Positions 4,401 to 40,800 of a stretch of DNA of 64,000 nucleotides are shown one piece after another. Within the stretch, counting starts at the first letter, position 1, and the number at the start of each line of letters is the position of its first letter. Location: contig CATNEN010000013.1 of NCBI GenBank assembly GCA_950097015.1, positions 1-64,000 on the forward strand, in the 5' to 3' direction. The DNA comes from Macrostomum hystrix (Eukaryota > Animalia > Platyhelminthes). The position numbers were made by a program, and so were the translations under genes. The notes under the pieces were generated by a model. The model was not told the DNA's origin, did no database searches, and saw only the letters and a list, made by a program, of their open reading frames with translations.

Positions 4401-7400
4401 TCACCAGCGGAAACAGCGGCCTCGATCTTGTCCATGTAGCCTTTGTTGCCAGCCTAATGACCTCAGCGCATCTCCGTACCTGTTCTTGTCCACTTAATGC
4501 CTGTAGCTGGGGATCAATCATCAGCGGCCAGCGCTCGGCTTACTTGTCAGAATTGTGGCATTTTCGATTGACAGCGGTCACTGGGCAGACCCTCGTTATT
4601 CCAGGTGGCAATCTGAGCGTCATCTCCCAGCCATGGAGATTGGATCGATGTTCTCAGTGATTGGTACTCGCGTTTGGCAGACCCTTAAGGAATGGCAGCC
4701 CAGCTGGTCATAAGGTCCATACGGTACTGCTTTGTGAAGCAACGACGTAGGACAGGAAGGCGGCAGTGATGAGGACATCACCGGGCAGAGTCTTTTCCTG
4801 CTCCTTGTAGAGCTTAACTTGGTTGCCCAGCGAATGTTCTCTGAAGCCAGTCCACCGACAAGTCTGTTGGCCAAAACTCGATGGTCTTGTACGTGAGGTC
4901 GCTTCCTGCTGGCACTTCATCTTGTCAGCCGTAGCCTTCTCGAACTCGGCAGTAAGGATGCCCAGCTTGTTCTCCAACTCACGGATCTTTGGCACTGGAT
5001 GCCCTCTAGCTTCTCAGTAGCCGCTCGCAGCTGCTCGTTGGCCTCATCGAGTGCATCGCGCTTGGGCTTACAAAAGTGTATAACCTCGTAGTAACTACGA
5101 TGTGATTACCCAGGAGCACAGCCCAGAGGCGGGCCATCGACTTCGATCTTGATTAGCTCTGGCTCGAACTCCGGATCCTTGATTACCTGTCTACTTCTTT
5201 TAGGCAGTTCTCATGAATGTTGTCTTTATCGTAGTGAATCAGATTGTCCAGGAACTGATCGCCCTTGCCCAGTGATTCCCGCCTTGGTATTCTTCCAGCT
5301 GCGATCATTGACCTTGGGCACTTTGCCTGCCTGGTGCCAGTAGGCACATGACAGCGGCTGCCACCTTTACGACAGCCTCCGGAGGGGTACCGAACGACTT
5401 CATCTCAGTCAGATTGTTCTTGTTCAGTTGTGTTCAAGGGCGCTCCTGGGCAGCCTGCAGTGCGGGCTCAGCCTTGGCCAGATCTTCTTCGCATTCCTTC
5501 TGCTTGACTGTCACATTAGCCTTGATCTTCGACACCTTCTCCTCCTCCCTGATCGGCGAACGCCTTCTCTTTGCTGACCTTTCAGTCTCGGTGCCCACAA
5601 TTCCAGCAGCTTGTTTGCATCCTCGTTCTTCTGGGCCAGCTCTACTTCCTGTGCTGCCAGCTTTGCCTTGAGATCGTCCACCTGCTGGGCCGTTGACTCC
5701 AGTTTTCTCTAGACCGTTCTCCAGACGGCTCAGTCTTTCCTAGAGAGATCCGAGTGCTGACGCTTTAGCATGTTTTGGTAGAGGTTGATCTGCTCGAGGA
5801 ACGACTTCGGTGTGTGTAGTTGTAGCGTCGCTCGTTCAGTAGATATTCTGCGCTCTTCTCGTTCACCGATTTGTGCACAAAGCTCATGAACTGAGCCACA
5901 GTCTCTCTGGAGGCCTCGTCAGAAGCTCCACGTCCTGAAGGAAGCGCCTGGAAACCCCGAGATGAGAGCTTCTTTGGGCCATTCGTGGAACCCAATCAAT
6001 TGCCGTGCAGTTGACAAACGGCTGGGAATTTGCGAGCGCGAACGCGTAGTGCAGTTCCGACCGGGCTGAAGCACAGAATCACCTTTAGGGTTTCGTCGGA
6101 CCTTGCGATGAAGTACTTCCAGCAGTTCTCGCGGGTGTCCTGGAGGCCAACTCCTTTCACTTCGGAACGCATTCCGTTGATAACGTTCTCAACTTCATCG
6201 TCAGGCAGGAGGTCCGGGATTTCACCGGATGCCAGTAGATCGTTAACGAGCACGAGGAACTCTCGTCGGGCCACCTGTGCGTCGGTCATGAGGAAGACCA
6301 TGCCGATGTTCTTCAGGCCTGCTTTGATATATAGCTGCGCAAGGTCAGCCTTGAGGTCTGGAATGCTGTAGCCCTTGCGTAAGGTGATCTGGAACACTTC
6401 CAGGCTGCTGATGAAGGCGGCGAGGCGAGACAGCGACTGCTTGCCGGAGCCGCCGACGCCAACCAGGAGGGCATTGCCACGCGGCGATTCCAGAATGCGG
6501 TTGATGCGCAGAATGTGCGCAATGGCGTCCTCGAATAGCACCAGGTTCATCGCTGCATTGATCTCGTTGTCAGTTGTCCAGAGCATCCAGCAGGATCTTG
6601 TTGATGTCTTGGAAACTTCTCGACTGGCATGTACTCGGCTCTCCGATGCCTGTGGCAAAGTGGCAGTACATGTTAGGCGATGCAAATACCCACTGCTCAT
6701 CCACTGATCTTCGAATCCCTTCTTGACGATCTCCTTCACAATCTTCTTGTACGTCTCAATGTCGGCTTCCTCCGGTTCAGTTTGTCGCAGTAGACCCGCT
6801 CAGCCTCGTGCATGTACAGGCGGATGATGTCTGCTCGGCTGCTTCAGGCACTCAGGGAGGGTGAACAGCAGGCCCTGAAATATTTAGGTTATAAAATACA
6901 TTTTGGATTTGAAAAAAATGCTGAAATTCTTCTGTGGAAGTTCATAAATTCTTAGTCTGTGACACGATTTTTTAACTAATAAGCTCTTTCGAAATACGTT
7001 AAAAATTTAGTAGGATGAATGGAAATTTTCTATAGAATCATTAGACAAATCAGTAGTTATTTTTACCTGGAAGATGTTGCTGAGGTCGCGGAGGTTGAAC
7101 ACGTAGTGGAACTTAATAGCCGTCGGCAGGAAGACCGAAGCCATCTTATTGTGCAGCGTGAGCGCTGTGTCGGTGACGCTGCCCAGCCATCTTCTGCACA
7201 ATGGCCGGGAAGCTGTGGCATCTGCAAGTGCTGAGACAGGATGCTGTTGTAGATGGTGCGCACTGCGTCCTGACCAGGAAAGGACAGGGCGAACACGGCA
7301 AAGTGGCGCTGCAGACGCGGATTGATGGTGAAGCTGCCAGCTGTCGGGTTCATGCAGGCCACGTACTGCGTGTTGTGAATGTCCTTCAGGGTCAGCTTAC

Positions 7401-21477: not shown

Positions 21478-23776
21478 ATGTCCAGCTCCGCCTCGCCTCC
21501 CCGTCACTTCGTCCCCGGCCCACTGATTGAGCGGCAGTTGCGCCGCCTGGCCCAGCACGAGTACAGCGCCTCAGGCAGCTCCCTGATGGAGTTCATCATG
21601 CAGCCATTCTGGCGCCACTTGCTCAGCCTTGTACCAATGTGGGCTGCGCCAAATGCGCTGACTCTAACCGGATTGGCGCTCAATGCTAGCAGCGCCGGCC
21701 TCTTGCTGTGGTACTGCCCGGAGGCCAGGCAGAGCCCTCCAGCTTGGCTCTGTGTCTACGCCGCCGTGGCTCTGTTCAGCTACCAGACATTGGATGCGCT
21801 TGACGGCAAACAGGCTAGGAGGTAATTGCTAATGACAATGCGAATTCCTTAACCATAAGTATGATCTCTATGATCACCTTTAGATTCCCTCTGACCTCCA
21901 GAATAATAATACTCGTAATATAATATTTGCAGGAGGGTTGCGGACAATGGCACATAATTTCGTGACAGTTGACCCGCAGCCAGCGAGGAGGCAATTCTGC
22001 CCATTCCACTGAGTCCTGACCACACACGCACACAGATACTGTACGCAGGCACTCGCTCACACATGTGTGTACATCTGCCCTGACTTTCTCATCGTCAGAC
22101 AGTGTACACGTTCGCAGTGGCTTGGAGGTTGGCCCTCAAGTGTGTCAATTGCAAGACAAGCCCCCAAGCCTTCTCTCCGCGGCTGCGCCATAAATGAATG
22201 CGGCCTCGCCGCGGAATCGAGCTCAGGGACCTTGGTGCGTGAGGCAAACGCGTTAAACGCTCTGCCACCAACCCCCTGACTTCCAGAATCTCCTTCATCA
22301 CCTTGAGATTCTCTCTCTCCAGAATCTCCTTAAGCATTTTGTGGATTAAAAAATACAGAACATCTAGTCTCAGAGCATCTTGGGCCTTAAAATTAGCTCT
22401 CGGAAATAAACTTATACAGGACCAACACCGCTAATCCATTGGGCGAGCTCTTCGACCATGGCTGCGACGCGGCCAACACGCTGTTACTGTGCGTGTGTGT
22501 CTGCATCTCGGCTGGCTTTGGTCACGAGCCGCATCTGCTATTATTTATGGTCGGAGCACCGCAGACTGTGTTCTTTATGGCTCACTGGGTCGGCTACAAC
22601 ACTGGCCGGCTGCAATTCGGCTATGTTGACGTCACCGAAGCTCAGGCTGCAGCCATTGCTGTGTTTATAGTCACCGCCTGGGTGGGTATTGATATCTGGG
22701 CAGTGCAGCCGGCTGCCAACCTGCTGCCTTGGTTGCGAGTGCGACACTGCTTGGTAGGAGAATTTCCAGTGTTTTATTACCTCAGACGCTCATGAAATTC
22801 CCGCATTCCTCAGATGCTCAGGGTGAAATTCCCGCATTCCTCAGATGCTCAGGGTGAAATTCACGCATTCCTCAGATGCTCAGGGTGAAATACACGCATT
22901 CCTCAGATGCTCAGGGTGAAATTCCCGCATTCCTCAGATGCTCAGGGTGAAATTCCCGCATTCCTCAGATGCTCAGGGTGAAATTCACGCATTCCTCAGA
23001 TGCTCAGTGTGACACTCATTCCTCAGATGCTCAGGGTGAAATACACACATTCCTCAGATGCTCAGGGTGAAATTCCCACATTCCTCAGATGCTCAGGGTG
23101 AAATACACACATTCCTCAGATGCTCAGGGTGAAATTCCCACATTCCTCAGATGCTCAGGGTGAAATTCCCGCATTCCTCAGATGCTCAGGGTGAAATTCC
23201 CGCATTCCTCAGATGCTCAGGGTGAAATACACACATTCCTCATAATGAGCACCTAAATGAGCATACTGAATTAATCTCGGCACACGTCTCACATCCTGTC
23301 AACAGCCAATCTTCACCGTGGTCGCCTCAGTTCCGCTCCTTATCCGCCTGTCGGTCTCCCTGCTTAGTCCCGCCGGTCGTCGCAGCGTTGCCGGCACTAG
23401 CCGCCTTGGTCCCGGCCTGTGCTGGTCGGCGCTAGCCATGCTGATCGGCTTGTCCGCCGGAGTGGCCGTTCTTAACGGTGCCCTGTATCGCCGACCCTGC
23501 CTGCTAGCTATCGCCCTAGGCCTGCCGGCTGTCAAGACTTGCCAACGTTTAATAGTCGCTCAGATGACCCGCTCGGCGATTCGTACCCTCGACCTAGGCC
23601 TAATCTGGCCTGTTCTACTAGCCGGCGGACTGCGTTTCGGATCTCTGATTGGTTTGGACGAAGGTCTGGCCGTGTGGATTGTCATCACTGGCGCCGCTGT
23701 CGATTGCCTAATTTATTCTAGCCGGGTTTGCAGGCAAATCGCCGCTTACCTTGGCATTCGAGTGCTGCGTATTTGA
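21478..23776 (+). CDS. CEPT1: Choline/ethanolamine phosphotransferase (CDP-alcohol phosphotransferase), 3 exons, about 382 aa
   Basis: Exons 21478-21821, 22420-22753 and 23306-23776 have compatible phases. The spliced motif [26 protein letters not shown] is the CDP-alcohol phosphotransferase signature. N-terminal HEYSASGSSL...PFWRHL...WAAPNALTLTG and C-terminal VCRQIAAYLGIRVLRI match the CEPT1/CHPT1 family. Confidence 0.92.
21905..22275 (-). mobile_element. tRNA-derived SINE, copy 1 (CEPT intron 1)
   Basis: The minus-strand head GGGGTTGGTGGCAGAGCGTTTAACGCG...GAGCTCGATTCCG has Pol III A-box-like and B-box-like motifs. About 370 bp is homologous to 43591-43960. It has an ATT-rich tail and a possible 14-bp TSD CTGAC(C/T)TCCAGAAT (21891-21904 and 22276-22289). 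Confidence 0.75.
22781..23242. repeat. 31-bp minisatellite, about 14-15 copies (CEPT intron 2)
   Basis: Unit GAAATTCCCGCATTCCTCAGATGCTCAGGGT. Confidence 0.95.
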
Positions 23777-23914
23777 GTCGCATTGTTCGGCTTCTATTTA
23801 CTGAAACTTCAGTATTTGAGATTCTCTTTCACTTGAACTTCTTAGTTTTTATTAGTTTTGAAATTTGCTTTTTTCTATGTTTCTTTAGTACGAGCACATA
23901 ATTTGTCTGTCCTA

Positions 23915-24983
23915 GACAACTGTACTAGATGGATTGTGAGGTGGACACCTGTACTAGATGGATTGTGAGTTGGACACCTGTACTAGATGGATTGTGAGGT
24001 GGACACCTGTACTAGATGGATTGTGAGTTGGACACCTGTACTAGATGGATTGTGAGGTGGACACCTGTCCTAGATGGATTGTGAGTTGGACACCTGTCCT
24101 AGATGGATTGTGAGGTGGACACCTGTACTATATGGATTGTGAGGTGGACATCTGTACTAGATGGATTGTGAGTTGGACACCTGTACTAGATGGATTGTGA
24201 GGTGGACACCTGTACTAGATGGATTGTGAGGTGGACACCTGTACTAGATGGATTGTGAGGTGGACACCTGTACTAGATGGATTGTGAGGTGGACACCTGT
24301 ACTAGATGGATTGTGAGGTGGACACCTGTACTAGATGGATTGTGAGGTGGACACCTGTACTAGATGGATTGTGAGGTGGACACCTGTCCTAGATGGATTG
24401 TGAGTTGGACACCTGTCCTAGATGGATTGTGAGGTGGACACCTGTACTATATGGATTGTGAGGTGGACATCTGTACTAGATGGATTGTGAGTTGGACACC
24501 TGTACTAGATGGATTGTGAGGTGGACACCTGTACTAGATGGATTGTGAGGTGGACACCTGTACTAGATGGATTGTGAGGTGGACACCTGTACTAGATGGA
24601 TTGTGAGGTGGACACCTGTACTAGATGGATTGTGAGGTGGACACCTGTACTAGATGGATTGTGAGGTGGACACCTGTACTAGATGGATTGTGAGTCGGAC
24701 ACCTGTCCTAGATGGATTGTGAGGTGGACACCTGTACTAGATGGATTGTGAGGTGGACACCTGTACTAGATGGATTGTGAGGATGACACCTGTCCTAGAT
24801 GGATTGTGAGGTGGACACCTGTCCTAGATGGATTATGAGGTGGACACCTGTACTAGATGGATTGTGAGGTGGACACCTGTCCTAGATGGATTGTGAGGTG
24901 GACACCTGTACTAGATGGATTGTGAGGATGCCACCTGTCCTAGATGGATTGTGAGGTGGACACCTGTCCTAGATGGATTGTGA
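23915..24983. repeat. 29-bp minisatellite, about 37 copies
   Basis: Unit CCTGTACTAGATGGATTGTGAGGTGGACA, head-to-tail with no spacers. Confidence 0.97.
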
Positions 24984-25485
24984 TGGATAAAAGAAAAATG
25001 TTAACATTTTGTGTTGATTTTAAATTGCTTTGTTGTAAATCAAAGATTATAATAATTTAAAGTTTTATTGCTGTTTAGTTATAAAGAGTTTAGGCAGTGT
25101 TGTGCCTCGTATTTTACATTATTGTGTTATTTTACAACAATAGAAATGTTATTCTGTGTTGTCTCCTAGCGTTGTTTTGCAATTGATCCTTATTTAGTTA
25201 ATCCAGCTTACCACACGCTTATGTTTCTCATTGCGAGGCGGTATACTTAAATGAAAAAATAAAACTTTATGTTCCATAACCACACACTAATTTATTGACA
25301 CCTGTTTTGTAAAAATATTTTTGTCTCTCAATCTACTCCTAGTAGTAAAAATAGCTGATTTTATCAGCCCGCTTGTTTTTTAATAATCGTCTTGAGCGTC
25401 AGTCACGATACTCGCAATACTTCATTTGCTTTTTTAGTCATTGGCTTTGGCTTGCATTTCTACTGGATTGTGAGTAGCTCATTTG

Positions 25486-26335
25486 GTTTTGGGGATTCCC
25501 CAACAGTATGTCGTTCAGTATATGGAAATTCCCCATCAGTATGCTATTTGGTTTTGGGGATTCCCCACCAGTCTGCGATGTTGTATTGCGGATTCCCCAT
25601 CTGTATGAAATTTACTTTTGAGGATTCCCTATCTGTATAAAATGTAGTTTTGGGGATTCCGCATCTGTATGAAATTTAGTTTTGAGGATTCCCCCCCCTG
25701 TATGGAATGTAGTTTTAAGGATTCCCCATCTGCATGAAATGCAGTTTTGGGGATTCCTCATCTGTATGAAATTTTGTTTTGAGGATTCTCGATCAGTATG
25801 TCGTTCAGTGTATGAGTATAAAATTCGGTATTGGGGATTCCCCATCACTATGCAATTTAGTATTGGGGATTCCCTATCGGTACGCAATTTAGTATTGGGG
25901 ATTCCCTATCGGTACGCAATTTAGTATTGGGGATTCCCTATCGGTATGCAATTCTGTATTGGGGATTCCCCATCGTTATGCAATTTAGTATTTGGGATTC
26001 CCTATTGGTATGCAATTCTGTATTGGGGATTCCCCATCGGTATGCAATTTAGTATTTGGGATTCCCTATTGGTATGCAATTCTGTATTGGGGGTTCCCCA
26101 TCAGTATGCAATTCGGTATTGGGGGTTCCCCATCAGTATGCAATTATGTATTGGGGGTTCCCCATCAGTATGCAATTCGGTATTGGGGATTCCCCATCAG
26201 TATGCAATTCGGTATTGGGGATTCCCCATCAGTATGCAATTCGGTATTGGGGATTCCCCATCAGTATGCAATTCGGTATTGGGGATTCCCCATCAGTATG
26301 CAATTCGGTATTGGGGATTCCCCACCGGTATGCGG
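25486..26335. repeat. 32-bp minisatellite carrying the palindrome TGGGGATTCCCCA
   Basis: Unit TATTGGGGATTCCCCATCAGTATGCAATTCGG with period 32 (for example 26181 and 26213). Copies are degenerate on the left and near-identical on the right. Confidence 0.93.
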
Positions 26336-26600
26336 TTCTTAACTACCTATTATGAATTAAACAATGCATATTACAATCAGAGCCTGGCCTCTTTATTATT
26401 CTGGCATTCCCTAAATAAATTCAGGCCGGGGGGATGTGGTCAAGCTTTATTTTGTTCACAACGATAGCCACATTCAGTAAATCTTTTGGTATTGCTTTTA
26501 TCATTAGCTTCCTACAGAACGCGCTACCAGTCTGTATTGAAGTTAGGTCACGCTTTTTTAGTTTGTCACAAAAGCTAGCTGGCTTTGTTTAATTAATGTA

Positions 26601-28565
26601 CGAGGGGTGTTTCAAAAGTTTCCGGACTGACGTCACCATTTTGAGTTGAAATGGCCAAATCACTTGAAATTTGATATGCAATTGCAATAAGATTATTTTT
26701 ATTATGTCCTAAAATTTCAGCGCAATCGGATTAACTGATCAAAAGTTGTAATGAATTTTGCATTAAACATCAAAAACAACAAATACGATTTTTGGATTTC
26801 AGTTTCAAGCGATCACTCCTAATCACTGTCAGAGTCACTGATACCGTCGGCTGTGTCGCGAGGCTGACAGCTTGCGCGCTCTACGTACTCGCCTTCGATG
26901 GAGATGCACTTCTTGTAGCGCTCAATTAGCGCGTCGAAGCCAGCCTCCCAGAATTCAGCCTTCAGCTGACTAAGCGACTGATTGGTGGCATTGATGACTT
27001 CGTCACGAGTTGAGAAGATCTGACCACGCAGAGGCATCTTCATCTTACCGAATAAATGAATCGATACTGATCGATACCGAGCTTACAAGTTTCTCTCGAT
27101 GACACATGAGTTTTAGCCATAGACACATTAGACAACTGCGATGCGGCTTTAGCAGCTTAAAGCCGCATCAAAACGAAAAAGATTTTTAGCAGCCTACTAC
27201 GCTCTACCGTTCTGAAATGAGTCGACCGACCAACTCCGCGGACTTTGGGTCAAAACACAGCCAGCGCCACTTCATCATTGCATGTCAACGTCAAGGCAAG
27301 ACAGCGACGCATACGTTTGCAGAGGTATGCCAAGCATTCGGTGACTACGCGTTAGGTCGGTCGCAAGTGTTTGACCATCACCGACTTGCTGCTGGAGGTG
27401 CGACTAGTGTTGCTGATGCTCCACGATCAGGCCGTCCACGCTCCAGTACGGACGCCGGCACAGCCGCTGCTGTGCTGTCCTACCTGGAAGAGAATCCATC
27501 GGCAAAGCTACGTGAAATAGAGAGCAAGTTTGACATACCCTACGCTTCTGTCTGGCGCATTCTGAAACGCGAAGGATGGTCGAAGATCTGCGCCAAGTGG
27601 GTGCCACGTGACCTTACAGAAGAGCACAAGAAGGCAAGAGTGCGTTGCGCGCTGGAGAATCGGGCAGTGTGGGACGAGCTTGGAGACACCAAGTTCAAGG
27701 AGCTGACCATCACGATGGATGAGACTGTACTGCCCATGTTCCAGCCGTTAACCAAGCAGCAGACAATGCACTGGGGACCCAAGGGGCGCCATCCTCATCA
27801 GAAGGCAATGAAGTCATCCTGGACTCGAAATGTGATGTGCACTGTGTGGTTCGATGCTCGCGGAGTGCTGCTGGTTGACTATGTTCCACAAGGTCAGACT
27901 ATCAACTCAGATTACGTAATGGATCAGCTGAATCGCCTGCGAAGTGCAGTTTTGAGCAAGCGCCGCATAATGCGTCAGAAACCGTTTATTCTTTGGGACA
28001 ATGCGCGACCTCATGCTGCCGCTAGCACAAAGGCGAAGGTGGAGGAGCTCGGCTTTCGCCTGCTAAATCATCCTGCCTACAGTCCTGACCTCGCCATTGC
28101 TGACTTTCATTTATTCGGTAAGATGAAGATGCCTCTGCGTGGTCAGATCTTCTCAACTCGTGACGAAGTCATCAATGCCACCAATCAGTCGCTTAGTCAG
28201 CTGAAGGCTGAATTCTGGGAGGCTGGCTTCGACGCGCTAATTGAGCGCTACAAGAAGTGCATCTCCATCGAAGGCGAGTACGTAGAGCGCGCAAGCTGTC
28301 AGCCTCGCGACACAGCCGACGGTATCAGTGACTCTGACAGTGATTAGGAGTGATCGCTTGAAACTGAAATCCAAAAATCGTATTTGTTGTTTTTGATGTT
28401 TAATGCAAAATTCATTACAACTTTTGATCAGTTAATCCGATTGCGCTGAAATTTTAGGACATAATAAAAATAATCTTATTGCAATTGCATATCAAATTTC
28501 AAGTGATTTGGCCATTTCAACTCAAAATGGTGACGTCAGTCCGGAAACTTTTGAAACACCCCTCG
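26601..28565 (+). mobile_element. Mariner (Tc1/mariner, DD34D) element with 460-bp terminal inverted repeats
   Basis: TA dinucleotides flank both ends (26599-26600 and 28566-28567). The ends read CGAGGGGTGTTTCAAAAGTTTCCGG...CCGGAAACTTTTGAAACACCCCTCG. 26601-27060 is the reverse complement of 28106-28565. Confidence 0.95.
27217..28347 (+). CDS. Mariner transposase, intact, 376 aa
   Basis: Uninterrupted ORF with RSGRP (HTH linker), WVPRDL, ITMDET, WDNARPH and YSPDLAIAD. Exactly 34 residues separate the second and third catalytic Asp (DD34D). Confidence 0.96.
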   Translation: MSRPTNSADFGSKHSQRHFIIACQRQGKTATHTFAEVCQAFGDYALGRSQVFDHHRLAAGGATSVADAPRSGRPRSSTDAGTAAAVLSYLEENPSAKLREIESKFDIPYASVWRILKREGWSKICAKWVPRDLTEEHKKARVRCALENRAVWDELGDTKFKELTITMDETVLPMFQPLTKQQTMHWGPKGRHPHQKAMKSSWTRNVMCTVWFDARGVLLVDYVPQGQTINSDYVMDQLNRLRSAVLSKRRIMRQKPFILWDNARPHAAASTKAKVEELGFRLLNHPAYSPDLAIADFHLFGKMKMPLRGQIFSTRDEVINATNQSLSQLKAEFWEAGFDALIERYKKCISIEGEYVERASCQPRDTADGISDSDSD

Positions 28566-29248
28566 TACTTAGATTTTACTTACTCGAAGATGCACAGCTT
28601 TTTTCTTTTGTTTTTTTTCGATACGCACGTACTTGGTTTTTGCAGTCATGCAGTTTTTGCAGTAAAATGTGTGCAATAACAAAAAAATAGATGTCTAATC
28701 TGTCATATCAGTATTGGGTAAATAATGTAAATAATTACTACCGATTGAATTAATCTGTAACAATCTATTGATAATATTAGAGTGGAATAAATTGATAATT
28801 GATCACACCCATTAAGGGATCATGTGGATTATCCAGATTATGCAAAATGGAATGTATTACAACACGCATTCACAAATAAAGTTGTTAAATGCAATCACAG
28901 AATTTTATGGTTAGTAAACCTAGTCAAAGCCTTCTTTGGTTTTAGACTGTGGCCTTTAGGGGGCCAGGAGTTGACTGAATTGCATTTTATGTGCAAGGCT
29001 TTGTTCACAACGCTAGCCACATTCAGTAAATCTTTTGGTATTCCCCATCTGTATCTTCCTTACTGAGCCTCATTTGGAGCGAGCTCTGAATACGATATTG
29101 GGGCATGCTTGTATTCACAGCCAATGCTCCTTTGTCTCTGGTAGAACCTTCGAGCACGCATCAAAGCAATAGCCCACAATCTGCACCATCTCAGGTCGGC
29201 AGCCTACCAAGTCTCATCCCGTGTCATATACACCCTGTTTCAACACTG

Positions 29249-30078
29249 CCCTGCCTCATCTCTCCCCTGCCTCATCTCTCCCCTGCCTCATCTCTCCCCT
29301 TCCTTATCTCTCCCCTGCCTCATCCCTCCCCTGCCTCATCCCTCCCCTGCCTCATCCCTTCCCTGCCTCATCCCTCCCCTGCCTCATCTCTCCCCTGCCT
29401 CATCTCTCCCCTGCCTCATCTCTCCCCTGCCTCATCCCTCCCCTGCCTCATCTCTCCCCTGCCTCATCCCTCCCCTGCCTCATCTCTCCCCTGCCTCATC
29501 CCTCCCCTGCCTCATCCCTCCCCTTCCTTATCTCTCCCCTGCCTCATCTCTCCCCTGCCTCATCTCTCCCCTGCCTCATCTCTCCCCTGTCTCATCTCTC
29601 CCCTGCCTCATCTCTCCCCTGCCTCATCCCTCCCCTGCCTCATCCCTCCCCTTCCTTATCTCTCCCCTGCCTCATCTCTCCCCTGCCTCATCCCTCCCCT
29701 TCCTTATCTCTCCCCTGCCTCATCCCTCCCCTGCCTCATCTCTCCCCTGCCTCATCCCTCCCCTTCCTTATCTCTCCCCTGCCTCATCTCTCCCCTGCCT
29801 CATCCCTCCCCTTCCTTATCTCTCCCCTGCCTCATCCCTCCCCTGCCTCATCTCTCCCCTGCCTCATCCCTCCCCTTCCTTATCTCTCCCCTGCCTCATC
29901 TCTCCCCTGCCTCATCCCTCCCCTTCCTTATCTCTCCCCTGCCTCATCCCTCCCCTGCCTCATCTCTCCCCTGCCTCATCTCTCCCCTGTCTCATCTCTC
30001 CCCTGCCTCATCTCTCCCCTGCCTCATCCCTCCCCTGCCTCATCCCTCCCTCTCCTTCCTTATCTCTCTCCTGCCTCA
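29249..30078. repeat. Pyrimidine-rich 16-bp minisatellite
   Basis: Unit CCTGCCTCATCTCTCC with variants (CATCCCTCC, CCTTCCTTAT). Confidence 0.95.
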
Positions 30079-31208: not shown

Positions 31209-32724
31209 TCAGTCCGCTTCGTCAGCACCCGCGGACTCAGCGTCCAGTGCGACTATTGAAGACGATGGCGGCTGATTCTGCAGCTCCGCTGTCACCAGCG
31301 CGTAGGAGACCGTGAGTGTTCGATGCGGCTGCGGCGATGGCGTCTGGGACGGCTGCGTCTGCTGCGGTGACTGCAGCTCCGCGGCGGCGTCTTCAGCGAC
31401 TGTCGAATGCCACCAGCGATGCCTTCGTCCATAGCGTTGCCTCTGCTGCTGTTGCGCTTGGCGCTGGCCCCGCCAGACGCGGCCGAGGCAGTTGAGGACG
31501 CGCCGCCGAAAGCCGCTGCAGGAGGCGAAATAGGCCAAGAAGTTGGTGGCGTTGTTAGCGAACATCAGCGTCTTCAGGCCGTCCAGAGCTACTCGGCCGG
31601 CGTCCGTGCGAGGCAGCCAGTTTGTGACCTTCAACAGCTGGCCGACTGAGGCCGGCAGGGTGGTGCAGATGTGGATGACGGTCAGGACGGCGAGAAGGCG
31701 GGTGGCGCTCTCTCGATTGCGACTGGCCTCAGCGACCCGGCGCAGCTGCTGCTTCCGCTGGCCGGCGGAGCCACGATTGCACTTCCGCTGCTGCTGCTGC
31801 TGCTGCTGCTGCAGTTTTTTTCATCGTTTCAATGGATGTTGATGAAAATGCTGTGGTGACTGAAGCGGCCGCAGCGGTGGCACTCGAAGCCAGGGATCGT
31901 CGACGGCGCACGGCGGCATAGATGTAGAAGTTGCAGAGCAGCAGCACCGTGTACGGCACCACCAGGTAGGTGACAATGTCCAGCTTGGCAAACCAGCGTC
32001 CGAAATTACGATCGTAGGCGCAACGAGTCGGCAGGAGGCGAAAATTGTCGTAGGGCGACCGGCCCAGTTGCGACCAGTTGAGCCATTGCGGCGGCTGCTT
32101 CGGTCTCAGAAACAGCGGCGTCGTCTCCTGCTGGCCGGATGCTGCATCGTCTTCGTACGATGCCGATGTCCCGGCTCGCAGGATTCGCACGCAGCTGACG
32201 GTGAAGCGGTGAAACACGATGGGAAAATTCTTGACCACAATGCCACCGGAGAGGAGGCCGAACGCGATAGCGAAGGTGCGGCCGGTGATGTGGCGGACGG
32301 CCGCGTGCGGAAAGGCCACCAGGAGGAAGCGCTCGACGCCCAGAGCGCAGAGTGCGTACACGGCCAGGTCGCTGACTGTGGCGACGGCGGCCTGGTGTAG
32401 GCGGCACAGCGCCGGGTGCAGGTCGCGAATGTCCAGGCCGAGAGTCTCAATCAGCCAGTATCGCGTGACGGCCAGCAGAAGGACAGCGCAGTCGGCCAAG
32501 GCCAGGAACACCATCAGGAAGCGGGTGGTGTCCCGGTGGGTGCGTTCCGTAGCCTGCAGGTAGGCGGTCACGGAGTTGCCCACCACGCCGCCCACAATCA
32601 GCAGGCCGCACAAGATGCAGAGGATCCATTCGGCGAGGCGCACCGCGGCGCTGCTGGAGGCGTAGTCTATGGAACAAACCGCAACTGACTGCTCGCGCTC
32701 CGCGCGGCCAGCTTCCGACATCAT
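31209..32724 (-). CDS. Class A (rhodopsin-like) orphan/peptide GPCR, single exon, one +1 frameshift
   Basis: TM1 VVGNSVT, TM2 LALADCAVL, TM3 ERF (DRY equivalent) and TM5 VVPYTVLLLCNFYI lie in ORF 31729-32736. TM6 ATRLLAVLTVIHICTTLP and TM7 FANNATNFLAYF lie in the adjacent frame ending at 31209. The frames join if one A is removed from the A7 run (T7 at 31815-31821). The first ATG is at 32724; the track's 32736 start is GTG. Confidence 0.85.
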
Positions 32725-33400
32725 GATACGCTGCACTTTTCAATGCCTAGAGAACTAGATTGGCAGCCCCTGGCTCACTAAAGTCAGTCGAACTTTAACC
32801 TGGCCTTAGTTTTATTGCTCCGCGGCTCCCTGTCAGACTCGTGGTTGGCCAGCATTCCGGCCAGCCAATCAGGTTCAGTCCTAGCCAGGGCTCAAACTGT
32901 GTCGCTGAAAATTTACTTAACAATCCCTCGTTTGTCTGAGTCCATCTGTTCCGCTAGTTCCTTATTGAATATTGTTCTTTAGTCTACTCAGTTAAGAAAT
33001 GTACTTTAGAAGCTAGAGTTCAGGATTCACTTTAAGCTGTCAAGAAAAGTCGATCTTTGATCTCCCTGTCAGCACAGCTGAATAGCACCTGTGACCTGTC
33101 ACATTTCATTTTCTGACAAACAATAGAAAAAATGTAACACTGGAAAAGTAACACCTAGCTTAAAAAGTAAAAAAAGTAATACAGCCATTATCTTACTTGT
33201 CAGTAGCTTTTTATTGCATGACTAAAAGACAGATTAAAACCATGTTAATCAAAAGAAGAAAATAATTCTGAAAGTCAATTATCACTCAGCAGATATTGCA
33301 GAAATCCGCGAATCGCAAAAATTGGCGAAATTGCCATAGAATATGAGTTGATAAGCAAATACAATTGGCTCCAATAGACGGAAAGTGACCAACAGCCTCA

Positions 33401-33985
33401 CTGATGTCATTCTGGCACACCTGATGTCATTCTTGCACACCTGATGTCATTCTTGCACACCTGATGTCATTCTGGCACACCTGATGTCATTCTTGCACAC
33501 CTGTTATCATTCTTGGATACCTGATGAGTCATTCTGGCACACCTGTTGTCATTCTTGGATACCTGATGAGTCATTCTGGCACACCTGATGTCATTCTTGC
33601 ACACCTGATGTCATTCTTGCACACCTGTTATCATTCTTGGATACCTGATGAGTCATTCTGGCACACCTGTTGTCATTCTTGGATACCTGATGAGTCATTC
33701 TGGCACACCTGATGTCATTCTTGCACACCTGATGTCATTCTGGCACACCTGATGTCATTCTTGCACACCTGATGTCATTCTTGCACACCTGATGTAATTC
33801 TTGCACACCTGATGTCATTCTGGCACACCTGATGTCATTCTTGCACACCTGTTATCATTCTTGGATACCTGATGAGTCATTCTGGCACACCTGTTGTCAT
33901 TCTTGGACACCTGATGTCATTCTTGCACACCTGATGACATTCTTGCACACCTGATGTCATTATTGCTTATCTGATGTCATTCTGA
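33401..33985. repeat. 20-bp minisatellite with variant units
   Basis: Unit CACACCTGATGTCATTCT(T/G)G, with interspersed GTTATCATTCTTGGATACCTGATGAGTC variants. Confidence 0.95.
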
Positions 33986-34370
33986 TGCACAAAATAACAT
34001 ACCTGTTGTCATCCTGGCATACCCAAAGTCACTTTGGCACATCTTTTGTTTGGCTATTACAGTACTGAAAAGTACAAAATCTGATTACAATAATTAAAAA
34101 GGTACGATTATATGCAAAAATACTTTTAACCAATTGCACAATGCTCCGATAGCACCTATTTACGAGGACAAAAATGTAATAAAGAAAATATTACAGGTAT
34201 CGATTTCGACTCAAGCAGTCAAGTTAGTCGAAATCGCACGGAATATTGCGGGTGAGAATATTGCATGCCCTGTAAATGATTCTCAATAAATTCAAGACAA
34301 TTAAATTTCGGCATCATAAGGATCTTCAGTAATGCGAAGCTAAAGAATCTTAAAGGTTTCATTTAAGTAT

Positions 34371-34628
34371 TTTAGGGATCATGAAATTTAGGAATGCTGA
34401 TGAAGTTTAGGGATCCTGAAGTTTAGGAATGCTGATGAAGTTTAGGGATCATGAAGTTTAGGGATCCTGAAGTTTAGGAATGATGATGAAGTTTAGGGAT
34501 CCTGAAGTTTAGGGATCCTGAAGTTTAGGGATCCTGAAGTTTAGGAATGATGATGAAGTTTAGGGATCCTGAAGTTTAGGGATCCTGAAGTTTAGGGATC
34601 ATGAAGATTAGGGATCCTGAAGTTTAGG
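34371..34628. repeat. About 16-bp minisatellite
   Basis: Unit GATCCTGAAGTTTAGG with GAATGATGATGAAG variants. Confidence 0.9.
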
Positions 34629-34803
34629 CAACGGTCCGAAGCTAAATACACGCATGATGTGGAGCAGTTTCAACTTCAACAATTGATAGATTCTTTTCTG
34701 TTGTCATCTCAGTCATTCTGTGGTCCTTTGCCTATTGAAACACGGTCGTAAAGAAGCTGAGCAAAAATTGAAGAAAAAAATGAGCCAAAAACATAAGGAA
34801 AAA

Positions 34804-37800
34804 TCAAGAATAATTCCAGCCAATGAGGGCGTGGCAGACCAGCAGGTACAGCATGGCAACGGTCACCGTGCACACCATCATGGGGAAGCCGACACTGCAA
34901 TGCGTGGAGGGTGGGTTTGGTGCCAGTGAAATGACAAATTGATTGCTAATAGGAGCTGCAAATAGCGCTTGAAAAGCTGAGAAGCCCGACTCAAAACTAA
35001 CGAAAAGCTGACAGAGCGAAGGAAAAGTGCAAAACAGCGATAATGCCTCGGCCACCCTGGATTAGTAAACAAGCGGCCTCTTTAAACAGAAAAAACTGCG
35101 CAGGCAAACTCAGCTACGAAAGGCGCCCAAAATGCACACAGAAATCTAACAGCCACAGCGCCCTCTCGCCCAGAACAGGCCGAGCAAACTTCTTTTTCCC
35201 TTTTTTGCCTCATCGAATTACTTCGCTTTCGGGATGCACTCAGTGCAAAAAAAACAGCACATGTTGAAGAGATCGTGATTGAGACTATTTAGACCAGGGC
35301 TCGGAAAAACTTGGTCCCCTGCCTAGATACTGCCAGCACTGCTCCGGAATCCATCTCTCTACACCGCCTTATCTCTCCCCTGTCTAATCTCCCACGCGTC
35401 TCAGCTCTCCAGTGTCTCATCTCTCCCATGTCTCATCTCCTCCGTGTCTCATCTCTCCCGTATCTCATTTCTCCCGTGCATCATCTCCCCCGTGTCTCAT
35501 CTCTCCCGAATATCATCTCTCCCGTGTCTCATCTCCCCCGTGTATCATCTCTCCCGTGTCTCATCTCCCCCGTGTCTCATCTCTCCCGTGTCTCATCTCC
35601 CCCGTGTCTCATCTCCCCCGTGTCTCATCTCTCCCGTGTCTCATTTCTCCCGTGCATCATCTCCCCCGTGTCTCATCTCTCCCGAATATCATCTCTCCCG
35701 TGTCTCATCTCCCCCGTGTATAATCTCTCCCGTGTCTCATCTCCCCCGTGTATCATCTCTCCCGTGTCTCATCTCCCCCGTGTCTCATCTCCCCCGTGTC
35801 TCATCTCTCCCGTGTCTCATCTCTCCCGTGTCTCATCTCTCCCGTGTCTCATCTCTCCCGTGTCTCATCTCTCCCGTGTATCATCTCTCCCGTGCATCAT
35901 CTCCCCCGTGTCTCATCTCTCCCGAATATCATCTCTCCCGTGTCTCATCTCCCCCGTGTATCATCTCTCCCGTGTCTCATCTCCCCCGTGTCTCATCTCC
36001 CCCGTGTCTCATCTCTCCCGTGTCTCATCTCTCCCGTGTCTCATCTCTCCCGTGTCTCATCTCTCCCGTATATCATCTCTCCCGTATCTCATCTCCCCCG
36101 TGTCTCATCTCTCCCGTGTCTCATCTCTCCCGTGTCTCATCTCCCCCGTGTCTCATCTCTCCCGTGTCTCATCTCTCCCGTGTCTCATCTCTTTCGTGTC
36201 TCATCTCTCCCATGTCTCCTGTCCTTGGCCAGTGAGGCTAGCAGCTCGTTTTAGTTCCACCGACTCACTAATATAGGCCCTGTTATCCTGAGCTGCAAGA
36301 CGCGGGGATTTTCAGATGAGATCCGCAGGCAACAATATAGAAACTGTACAGGACTGCAGAGGTTGCGCTAATGTCTTCCTACACTTTTATGAATGTTTCG
36401 GTGTCCTGATTTAGTCTTGAATATTCGCCCTACATCGTCTGTCTAATCCTCCCGGAGTAGAATTCCTGCGTAACACAGTTTTTGATGAGCCAGTTGCTGA
36501 TCCTGCCTCAGCGTAATCCCAATGGGCCAACGTCCCAGCTAGCTTAGTGCCGTAAATTAACACCAAATTTTTGTTAGGCAAGGTGGTCCTCCGTGTCTTC
36601 TTGTTAGCTGTCCTGCAGGCTTTAGCAGTGATTTATTTGGCAGGCCACTTGCTCCTCGCGAATTTATAATGGCACAGACTGAGGGGGCCAGTCTGCGAAT
36701 CTGTTTGCGAGATTAAGAGTAAAAGAGAAACGAAGCCAAGATAAAAGCGGGGAATAGTATCTCTAGAATTTACTTAAAAATATATTCTGAAATGGAATAG
36801 ATAATGTTAAACAGCTGTCTGTGGGTGGATGTGATGAACACTGGTGGTCTGGGGTGGGTGTGATGTACACTGGAGTTCTGGGGTAAGTGTGATGTACGCT
36901 GGTGTTCTGAGGAGTGTGTTATGTACATTGGTGTTCTAGGGTGGGGTGATGTACGCTGGTGTTCTGAGGAGTGTCTGATGTACATTGGTGTTCTAGGGTG
37001 GGGTGATGTACGCTGGTGTTCTGAGGAGTGTGTTATTTACATTGGTGTTCTAGGGTGGGGTGATGTACGCTGGTGTTCTGATGGGGATGTGTTTTACTCA
37101 TGTTATCTTGGGTGGGTGTGATGTCCACTGGTGATCTGGGGTGGGTGTGATGTCCACTGGTGATCTGGGGTGGGTGTGATGTCCACTGGTGATCTGGGGT
37201 GGGTGTGATGTCCACTGGTGATCTGGGGTGGGTGTGATGTCCACTGGTGATCTGGGGTGGGTGTGATGTCCACTGGTGATCTGGGGTGGGTGTGATGTAC
37301 ACTGGTGTTCTGGGGTGGGTGTGATGTACACTGGTGATCTAGGAAAAGTGTGATGCACACTCGTGTTCTGGGGTGGCGTGATGTACATTGGTGATCTAGG
37401 AAAAGTGTGATGTACACTGGTGTTCTGGGGTGGGTGTGATATATACTGGTGATCTAGGAAAATTGTGATGTTCACTGGTGTTCTAGGGTGGGGTGATGTA
37501 CGCTGGTGTTCTGAGGAGTGTGTGATGTACATTGGTGTTCTAGGGTGGGGTGATGTACGCTGGTGTTCTGATGGGGATGTGTTTTACTCATGTTATCTTG
37601 GGTGGGTGTGATGTCCACTGGTGATCTGGGGTGGGTGTGATGTCCACTGGTGATCTGGGGTGGGTGTGATGTCCACTGGTGATCTGGGGTGGGTGTGATG
37701 TCCACTGGTGATCTGGGGTGGGTGTGATGTACACTGGTGTTCTGGGGTGGGTGTGATGTACACTGGTGATCTAGGAAAAGTGTGATGTACACTCGTGTTC

Positions 37801-40800
37801 TGGGGTGGCGTGATGTACATTGGTGATCTAGGAAAAGTGTGATGTACACTGGTGTTCTGGGGTGGGTGTGATATATACTGGTGATCTAGGAAAATTGTGA
37901 TGTACACTGGTGTTCTGGGGTGGCGTGATGTACATTGGTGATCTAGGAAAAGTGTGATGTACAATGGTTTTCTGGGGTGGGTGTGGTGTAAAATGGCGGG
38001 AAGATTAATTTAATAATTTTATAACTAATAGTCCATCATTACGACTAATTATGGAAATAGATTAGGGAGAGGAGAAAAAATGAGATGCAGAGTGGATATT
38101 GTCGGGGATCGAGCCGCTGGGATCGCAGAGTCAGGCAAGGCGGATGGAAGGAAAGGCTCTGAAAATAGGGCTTCCTGAGCCTGGTAAGCGTTGAGCACAG
38201 CAAAGGAGTGAGTGGGAGTGAGCGGCAGATGATATTGAATAATGCATTCTAACTTAAGTGCTTAATGCTTAGAAAATCCATGCGATTATGACTAAATTTG
38301 GATTGAATGTTGCATTTTCAGATGCCCAATTTCTTCTGTCCTGGGCATTGACGTTTTCCTGAATTTAGTTTACCGGATTCCAATCTCCGTCAGGTGCTCT
38401 GTTGACGTCATTCTGTCAGAGGAAGACTGCAAAATAGGCAAGGCTGTGATGGAACGATATTTGGATATTTTTAGATTCTAAATCTCATCACTCATAGCTT
38501 CAAAAACTTATTTTTATATTTTCCCTAAATATTTTCCCGATCCCGATCGGCCGAAATACCGATTCCCAGAAATCTCGATTCACAGAAATCTTAATTCACC
38601 AAAATCTCGATTTACTGAGATCTCGATTCACAAAAAACCCTGTTCACCGAAATCCCGTTTCACTGAAATTTCGATTTACCGAAATCTCGAAATTCACCAA
38701 ATCTCAATTCACTACGATCAAAATTCACGAAAATCTCGATTCACGAAAATCTCGATACACCGAAATCTCGAATTAACTGAGATCTCGGTTCACCAAAATC
38801 TCGATTCACAAAAATCTAATTTCACAAAAATCTTGATTTACTGAGATCTCGATTTAACAAAATATCGATTGACAAAAAAACTCGATTCACCGAACTGGAA
38901 ATCTAGATTCTCCCAGTCGGCCCGGAAACCTAAATCTAAATTTAGAGTCCCCTAAATCGAAATTCAAGGAAATTCCAATCGCACCAAAATCGATTTTCTT
39001 AAATCTCTGAAATGCAATTTTAGCCAAATTCTAATTCAGCTCTTTGTAAAAAATCGGCATCAGATTGAAATTCAGATGCGCTCAACGAACAATTCGCTTG
39101 TCTTTGGGAACAACTCAGCTAATTAGGAGATATGCTTCATTTAGTTGCTGGCACCTGAGAACAGCTAAAGTACTTTTAGCCCCTAGCCTAAGCCGAACAG
39201 CAGCGAGCCCAGGCACGCACCGGAAGAACTGCACGAAGGTGAACGGGTAGCCGTTCTGCTCGGCGATGCCGGCGGCCACGACGTTGGCCGAGGCGCCGAT
39301 GACGGTGCCATTACCGCCGAGGCAGGCGCCGAAGGCCAGGGCCCAGACCAGTGGCAGGATGGGCAGCACGTCGGCGAGCTCCAGGATGATGGGGATCATG
39401 GCCGTGGTGAATGGGATATTATCGATAAAGGCGGAGGCCAGGGCGCTAACCCACAGGACGATGAGGATTGCCACGGGCAGCTGGGAGGATTCTGGCAAGC
39501 TCAGGATCACCTGCTTCATCTGGTCGCCAATCCAGGCGATGAGCTGCAGCTCGCGCAGGGCCTCCATCAGGGCGAACAGGGCGGCAAAGAAGATCAGCGT
39601 GCTCCACTCGATGCGGTGCAGCAGGGTGTCCATGTCGGCGAAGTCTGTCAGCACCAGCAGGGCGATACCACCCATTATAGCTATCCAACCTGCGTACGGG
39701 TGCGGAGGAACAACCAATTAATGCCGATTAACTACCGTACAATCTGCCGATTAACTACCGTACAATCTGCCGATTAACTACCGTACAATCTGCCAATTAA
39801 CTAACTGTACAATCTGCCAATTAACTATCGTACAATCTGCTGATTAACTAACTGTAAAATCTGCCGATTAACTACCGTACAATCTGCCGATTAACTAACT
39901 GTACAATCTGCCAATTAACTATCGTACAATCTGCTGATTAACTAACTGTACAATCTGGCGATTAACTACCGTACAATCTGCCGATTAACTAACTGTACAA
40001 TCTGCCGATTAACTACTGTACAATCTGCCGATTAACTACTGTACAATCTGCCGATTAACTACTGTACAATCTGCCGATTAACTACCGTACAATCTGCCGA
40101 TTAACTAACTGTACAATCTGCCGATTAACTACCGTACAATCTGCCGATTAACTAACTGTACAATCTGCCGATTAACTACTGTACAATCTGCCGATTAACT
40201 ACCGTACAATCTACCGATTAAACATCCTACAAATGACCGATAATCTATTTGACAAACTGCTGACGATCTGCTTGACGATATGCCCGTTTCATACGAAAAA
40301 ATCTACAATTTACCTTCATAACAATATGTCTCTTAAGTACTCCAGAATCTGCTAACGATCTACATTACAAATAATTAATAGATTATCTGTTATATTTTCT
40401 TCATGTGAAAATCAGAGAAATGACACATCAAGAAGCTGATTATCAATGAGAATAATCAGTAAATCGTTAAATAATTTAATCGTTACAATGACCCAATAAT
40501 TTCCACCAACATTATAATGTGCTAAATAATCACAACGATAGTCAAGAAATTCAAACACAGCAAATCATCAGCTAATAAGTCTGGCAAAGGGAAGGTTTTG
40601 AATCAGTGCATTAAAAAATGCCTACCAATTAAAATGATTTTTGCATACTCAAAATCAATAACCAATCGAAAGTGAATAATAGCACTTCATTCACACGCAC
40701 GGTAAGTGTTACTAATAGAGCTTCTGAAATTTAAAGGCTTAAGCGTACCAAGATCCAAGTGCAAGGCGTCGACAGTTGACGATAGAAAGAACAATAAGAT

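Follow-up and report, generated by a model that had tools for sequence, protein, structure and literature searches.

The first 64,000 nucleotides of contig CATNEN010000013.1 of the flatworm Macrostomum hystrix (assembly GCA_950097015.1), here called the window, contain a mariner transposon of 1965 bp (positions 26601-28565) with terminal inverted repeats (TIRs) of 460 bp. The two arms, 26601-27060 and 28106-28565, are perfect reverse complements (460 nucleotides, no mismatches). The right arm, on the plus strand, is the native 3' end of the element and consists of the last ~80 codons of the transposase gene, the stop codon and a 3' untranslated region (UTR) of 218 bp; it starts two bases past the codon of the last catalytic aspartate, D296 (28102-28104). 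The left arm is an inverted copy of this end on the minus strand, made up of the inverted 3' UTR (26601-26818) and the inverted stop codon and last ~80 codons (26819-27060). Each arm carries 242 nucleotides of coding sequence, and a minus-strand open reading frame (ORF) in the left arm (26819-27043) repeats exactly the 74 C-terminal residues of the transposase.

The left arm is followed by 156 bp of unique, family-specific 5' UTR (27061-27216) and, on the plus strand, by a transposase ORF of 376 amino acids with a DD34D signature (27217-28347). TA target-site duplications, read from the sequence and from a single TA at an empty site described below, border the element at 26599-26600 and 28566-28567. 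A first-pass annotation had proposed an inverted copy of the 3' end that includes transposase coding sequence, its antisense repeat of the C-terminus, an intact DD34D ORF, TA at both ends and 156 unique bp before the ATG; all of these were recovered, with 460 of 460 arm bases complementary, all 376 codons open and the unique region of exactly the expected length. An inverted-repeat search of the window returned a single inverted repeat, at 26591-27060 and 28106-28575 (470 nucleotides, 99%), in which the 10 nucleotides beyond each arm are a partial chance match in the flanks. Chance cannot account for a perfect inverted repeat of 460 bp.

Each arm ends in a 28-bp core, CGAGGGGTGTTTCAAAAGTTTCCGGACT on the left (26601-26628, plus strand) and its counterpart within the right arm (28538-28565), presumed to be the TIR proper that the transposase binds. 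This core is identical at 27 of 28 positions to both TIRs of a sister mariner family of the same genome that has short TIRs (45-61 bp), and the resemblance to the sister TIRs is limited to these 28 bp. The core occurs at the two termini only; no internal copy was found in the element, even at 10 mismatches. Thus, the arms are not long TIRs of the inverted-repeat/direct-repeat (IR-DR) type, in which binding sites are repeated. Recognition by the transposase would be confined to the last ~28 bp at each end, the remaining ~430 bp per arm being passengers. The unique 5' UTR contains a small hairpin of its own (27140-27169; 13-bp stem of 12 Watson-Crick pairs and one G-U pair, 4-nucleotide loop). 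Copies of the sister family have apparent short palindromes of other sequence at roughly the same position in a MAFFT alignment, which is without statistical support.

To judge from profile and structure-based comparisons, the ORF encodes a DD34D transposase of mariner type whose N-terminus is complete. Pfam finds Transposase_1 (55.4 bits, cutoff 24) and DDE_3, and matches to HTH_48, HTH_Tnp_Tc3_2 and HTH_32 fall slightly under their cutoffs. In a phmmer search against solved structures, residues 12-357 align to the full-length Mos1 transposase, including the N-terminal paired helix-turn-helix domain typical of mariners, and the catalytic domain aligns to human SETMAR. The catalytic triad of this DDE/RNase-H-like transposase, D168 (27718-27720), D261 (27997-27999) and D296 (34 residues separate the second from the third), aligns to the catalytic residues of both SETMAR and Mos1. 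Ten relatives encoded on short contigs of public assemblies (59-74% identity) were aligned with the ORF; it keeps every residue that is invariant among them, including the three aspartates. Related proteins in this public-assembly collection range from 59 to 75% identity, and the collection holds no match to the exact 376-aa protein. A protein-pattern scan and a TIR-pattern scan of metagenome contigs were both without matches. The element further shares with mariners the duplication of a TA target, seen around five complete-ended copies and at an empty site with a single TA. It departs from them in the length of its TIRs (460 bp instead of ~28-32 bp) and of the whole (1965 bp instead of ~1.3 kb), features that are typical of mariners rather than strictly defining.

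Genomic copies and an empty insertion site

The 220-Mb assembly (42 contigs; the window is the start of contig C13) was searched with the element and the matches were locally re-aligned; the copy counts are lower bounds. A copy on contig C35 (1238014-1239978, 1965 bp) is identical to the window copy at every base and has the same intact ORF. A third full-length copy on C12 (2543997-2545961, 1965 bp) has 12 differences, one of which turns W152 into a stop codon. Copies on C29 (6869075-6870408, 1334 bp) and C1 (682397-683625, 1229 bp) have internal deletions and retain both 460-bp arms; the deletion junctions show microhomology of 4 bp (CACA) and 1-2 bp, as expected from abortive gap repair after excision, of which such microhomologies are the usual signature. 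A copy on C25 (9339125-9340399) is truncated at its 3' side, is ~97% identical and still contains the junction between arm and unique region. Five solo arm fragments (178-431 bp, 97-98% identity) complete the census.

The five copies with both ends lie at distinct sites with unrelated flanks and have TA on both sides. The junction between arm position 460 and the unique region is the same in all six copies that hold the unique region, a result also obtained by searching with the unique region itself; because all copies share one junction, a single founding event is indicated. The first-pass annotation had called for copies with this junction at different TA sites and had named a fold-back artefact as a caveat. 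Inverted duplications can indeed arise from long-read chimeras, and two separate neighbouring copies might be mistaken for one element. However, the identical 1965-bp structure occurs on three contigs between unrelated flanks, its junction is common to six copies, each complete copy is enclosed by TA, and the empty site is clean. The chance that the structure is an artefact, or a pair of neighbours, is therefore negligible, and this explanation is already refuted by the copy census. The element is real and has recently been mobile as one unit, as is evident from the distinct TA sites of the five copies with both ends, from the pair of intact copies without a single difference and from the empty site.

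The empty site lies on contig C31, where a single TA (C31:3443877-3443878) is bordered by flanks that are 96-98% identical to those of the window copy. The left flank of the window copy ends at C31:3443878 and the right flank starts at C31:3443877, the overlap being one TA. C31 thus reads flank-TA-flank, and the window reads flank-TA-element-TA-flank. Collinearity extends well beyond the site: window 17040-38376 matches C31:3434000-3453000 at 93-99% identity, with the lower values in minisatellites, and the segments 2001-6000 and 56001-60000 of the window fall on C31 where collinearity predicts them, at 98-99% identity. On this evidence the start of C13 would represent the second, unpurged haplotype of C31's end, or else a segmental duplicate that arose very recently. 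Under both readings the insertion is younger than the 1-2% divergence between C13 and C31. The clean single TA without a footprint points to a site never occupied, rather than one vacated by excision. No empty alleles were found for the copies on C35 and C12; a nearby paralogue of the C35 flank is without the element and is too diverged at the site to represent an exact empty allele. The two identical intact copies and the site that is occupied on one contig and empty on the other make it probable that this mariner is still active in a flatworm genus kept in the laboratory.

The first-pass annotation had described a young, potentially autonomous element with two 3'-type ends. The two 3'-type ends, the intact DD34D transposase and the recent movement all stand. 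Its youth holds only in part, since a decayed copy diverged by ~2.7% already has the junction.

Several features of the surrounding DNA were recorded. The whole window (1-64000) is collinear with C31:3416980-3476173, within the last ~167 kb of that contig, at 98-99% identity with differences in minisatellite length. The surroundings of the element are rich in minisatellites (window 22793-26333, 29249-30050 and 33401-38894; periods 31, 29, 32, 16, 20, 16 and 29), and the arrays around it are not of the same length on C13 as on C31. Close to the left of the element, a sequence of 43 bp (26451-26493) is repeated at 29000-29042, and C31 has both copies as well. On the minus strand, ~3 kb downstream of the element, a 335-aa ORF (31729-32736) encodes an apparently hydrophobic, multi-pass protein and is possibly a receptor-like exon or gene.

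Origin of the long arms

Two related mariner families in the same genome provide a frame for the origin of the arms. The sister family, whose ORF is 72-79% identical to that of the 460-bp-TIR element, is represented by deletion derivatives of ~770 bp, and its 5' and 3' ends are identical to each other over ~34 nucleotides. These derivatives, which resemble MITEs (miniature inverted-repeat transposable elements), join the start of the ORF to its end between TA flanks (L033:1168-1935, L034:1268-2036 and L036:1328-2103; contigs C30 and C12), and their ORF-start segment matches at least 10 loci in the genome. A second family of ~1.76 kb was found as matches of ~70% identity and has at least 15 matches in the genome (for example L029:1031-2787, on C34 around 6295030-6296790; also L027, L028 and L030-L032). 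An intact 371-aa ORF, with 60% amino-acid identity to the 376-aa transposase, is present in 6/6 sampled copies of this family, and the sampled copies are 98-99% alike, so this family looks active by its sequence. Its TIRs are ~200 bp long and non-coding, with arms 94.6% identical to each other and a right arm that starts 33 bp past the stop codon. The general statement in the first-pass annotation that mariner TIRs are about 30 bp long is correct as a rule, but it does not hold for this second, apparently active mariner of the same genome.

The second family resembles the 460-bp-TIR element in its transposase clade, insertion at TA, long TIRs, intact ORFs and terminal 19 nucleotides, which are exactly the same in both; TIR positions 20-28 differ. 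It differs from it in having arms that are non-coding and less alike, and in being far more abundant. The 460-bp-TIR family is the scarcer one, with three full-length copies, two deleted copies and a handful of fragments.

The element is very likely a genuine, recently active DD34D mariner of the Tc1/mariner superfamily whose 5' end gave way to an inverted copy of the 3' end while the transposase gene stayed complete. An ancestor would have exchanged its 5' terminus for the inverted 3'-terminal 460 bp (3' UTR and last ~80 codons); the product is 1965 bp long, has perfect TIRs of 460 bp and keeps a whole transposase gene. Two founding routes can be envisaged. A template switch between the ends, by way of their identical TIRs, may have occurred during gap repair after excision; alternatively, the product may have arisen by deletion between two neighbouring head-to-head copies, as has been proposed for mariners of Rhodnius (PMC4678618). 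The junction (27060/27061) carries an 8-bp direct duplication, ATCGATAC-TG-ATCGATAC (27060-27077, plus strand), which looks like the templated filler found at repaired breaks. Thereafter the element has transposed as a whole into TA in the cut-and-paste manner usual for mariners, and its copies have decayed by nonsense mutation, internal deletion at microhomologies and truncation.

The arms appear to correct each other. At arm position 172 (window 26772/28394), both arms have A in the C13 and C35 copies, and in those on C29 and C1 both have G; C12 is mixed, with G in its 5' arm and A in its 3' arm. At arm position 211 (window 26811/28355), A is found in the C29 copy alone, and there in both arms. 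Because identical independent mutations at mirror positions are very unlikely, this pattern suggests arm-to-arm gene conversion, a process that may have kept the arms alike.

Several points weigh against this account of the element. The evidence for gene conversion comes from two sites only. A progenitor with short TIRs, which the first-pass annotation had expected, did not turn up in the assembly: none was found at 90% identity or more, and whether the query was the entire element or the unique region joined to the beginning of the ORF, every copy of this family that was recovered had the junction described above. The ancestral 5' end is accordingly inferred through the sister family alone. 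When the unique 156 bp are locally aligned with the 5' UTR of the sister family, the scores do not exceed those of shuffled sequence, and in the assembly the 156 bp match only within their own family. A further possibility is that the ancestor had a long non-coding TIR, like those of the second family, which later grew inward.

Two candidate relics of the ancestral 5' end were rejected. The bases TA CCGAGCTTACAAGTTTC at 27077 could have marked an old 5' TIR, in which case the element would be a whole copy with an inverted fragment added to it; MAFFT places these bases inside the 5' UTR, and no internal match to the core exists with 10 mismatches. The unique 156 bp were likewise considered as a remnant of a sister-like 5' UTR, and this was dismissed on the shuffled-level alignment scores.

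Mobility and a possible hairpin RNA

The element is plausibly autonomous, to judge from its coding capacity: the two identical intact copies would supply the transposase. Against autonomy, these two copies are the only intact ones and are identical to each other, and the more abundant second family, with the same terminal 19 nucleotides, might mobilise the element in trans. The ORF might then be intact merely because the copies are young, the element being a non-autonomous passenger moved by another mariner that recognises the same terminal bases. The consistently intact ORFs and at least 15 matches of the second family would fit such a donor, and the published mariner lineages with a replaced end are all non-autonomous (PMC4678618, PMC4161770). 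However, the two families differ at TIR positions 20-28, and the Mos1 transposase binds the whole 28 bp, small differences shifting its affinity 5-10 fold (PMC4505599). Moreover, the 376-aa ORF retains all residues invariant among the ten relatives, including the catalytic aspartates. We consider trans-mobilisation of a non-autonomous element unlikely and prefer an autonomous one.

The presence of two 3'-type ends had raised the expectation of increased mobility. Mos1 with two 3' (right) ends does transpose better, by 26-fold in vitro (PMC4505599, where Auge-Gouillou 2001 is also cited for two-right-end Mos1). This gain is owed to the fact that the two natural Mos1 ends are unlike at 4 of 28 bases; the better end of Mboumar-9 is its left one (PMC4505599). 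In the nearest short-TIR relative of the present element the ends already match, so no gain is predicted from two 3' ends; the scarcity of the family also speaks against carrying the Mos1 effect over to it.

A transcript that spans both arms could fold back on itself, as the first-pass annotation pointed out in proposing self-silencing. The predicted fold of the full-length sense RNA is trivially stable: 459/460 arm positions pair with their mirror partner, and the arms alone have a predicted folding energy of about -900 kcal/mol. A messenger RNA (mRNA) that started in the 156-bp unique region would be without the left arm and would form no hairpin, so the hairpin requires a transcript that starts outside the element. 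Hairpin RNA against the 3' end of the transposase message would accordingly be confined to read-through from flanking DNA, so that self-silencing would be conditional.

The element might on this basis limit itself, transcripts of both arms giving a 460-bp double-stranded RNA and hence small RNAs against the last 80 codons and the 3' UTR, as with Mu killer and MuDR in maize. The nearly complete pairing would be in keeping with such a role, as would the 242 nucleotides of coding sequence in the duplex. The family is also scarce even though the ~2.7% diverged copy implies some age for the rearranged form, and the sibling family with non-coding TIRs has at least 15 matches and an intact ORF in every copy sampled. 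Mu killer itself depends on read-through transcripts of a partial transposase duplication in inverted orientation (PMC3440606), which makes the idea a reasonable one. However, a promoter in the unique region would yield a normal mRNA that lacks the left arm and the hairpin, and the scarcity can be explained otherwise: the active lineage may have arisen recently, drift may have acted, or a 5' transposition enhancer may have been lost. That the family has not been shut down is shown by the pair of identical intact copies, together with the site with and without the element. Self-limitation by this route is doubtful. Somewhat less probable still is its fullest form, an autonomous animal transposon with a built-in 460-bp hairpin trigger, in which copies inserted in transcribed DNA throttle the whole family and gene conversion keeps the arms perfect. 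If it were true, the element would be a natural self-limiting mariner that could be compared with the sibling family, whose long TIRs hold no coding sequence.

Comparison with known systems

Replacement of one mariner end by the other is already known from defective insect elements; what is new here is its occurrence in a flatworm, in an apparently autonomous element with an intact transposase gene. The rearrangement can therefore leave the transposase gene whole, and its product can go on transposing for some time. The element offers a natural test of how several hundred extra bases of inverted repeat affect mariner mobility, and of whether an inverted coding copy within a mobile element draws RNA-based silencing in an animal. 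Controls exist in the same genome, in the form of the sister family with its 45-61-bp TIRs and the related family with non-coding TIRs of ~200 bp.

The closest parallels come from Rhodnius prolixus, whose elements Rpmar49 and Rpmar17 had their 5' part exchanged for the inverted 3' part (Filee et al. 2015, PMC4678618). Rpmar49 has TIRs of 221 bp with homology to transposase and is present as 13 independently transposed copies of one structure, and both elements are proposed to have originated by deletion between neighbouring copies through abortive gap repair (PMC4678618). The present element shares with them the replaced end, long TIRs with transposase sequence, a shared breakpoint (six copies with the junction, five of them with both ends at distinct TA sites) and amplification by true transposition. 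In contrast, the Rhodnius elements are deleted, non-autonomous and only ~0.9-1 kb long, and they belong to an insect, whereas the flatworm element has arms of 460 bp and a whole 376-aa ORF that is complete in the C13 and C35 copies.

End replacement has also given rise to seven Dromar MITE sublineages in Drosophila, in which the 3' end was replaced by the 5' end to form unusually long TIRs (Wallau et al. 2014, PMC4161770). Dromar7, Dromar11, Dromar28 and Dromar36 resemble the present element in having one end substituted by the other and long TIRs, and thereby show that the event is recurrent in mariners; they differ in polarity, their 3' end being the one replaced, and in being, without exception, non-coding MITEs. 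Constructs of Mos1 that carry two right ends, such as 3Tet3 (Trubitsyna et al. 2015, PMC4505599; PMC2642840), likewise have two 3'-type ends, but these ends are only 28 bp long and lack the 460-bp arms.

Long TIRs have other origins as well. The aphid LTIR/Lsra clade (PMC5490172) has TIRs of ~460 bp, but its transposases are DD40D or DD41D, whereas the spacing here is 34.

In IR-DR elements of the Tc3, Bari3 and Minos types, TIRs of hundreds of bases are non-coding and contain repeated transposase-binding sites. The present element has no internal copies of its binding site, and coding sequence makes up half of each arm.

Mu killer of maize (PMC3440606) is comparable in that an inverted duplication contains part of a transposase gene together with a TIR, so that a long hairpin RNA is possible; the corresponding feature here is the transposase coding sequence duplicated in inverted orientation in the two arms. 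Mu killer, however, is confined to one locus as a partial derivative that cannot move, and it acts in trans on MuDR, silencing it by way of the plant small interfering RNA and DNA-methylation pathways (PMC3440606). In the flatworm element, known here from its sequence alone, the inverted duplication lies inside a mobile element that appears to be functional.

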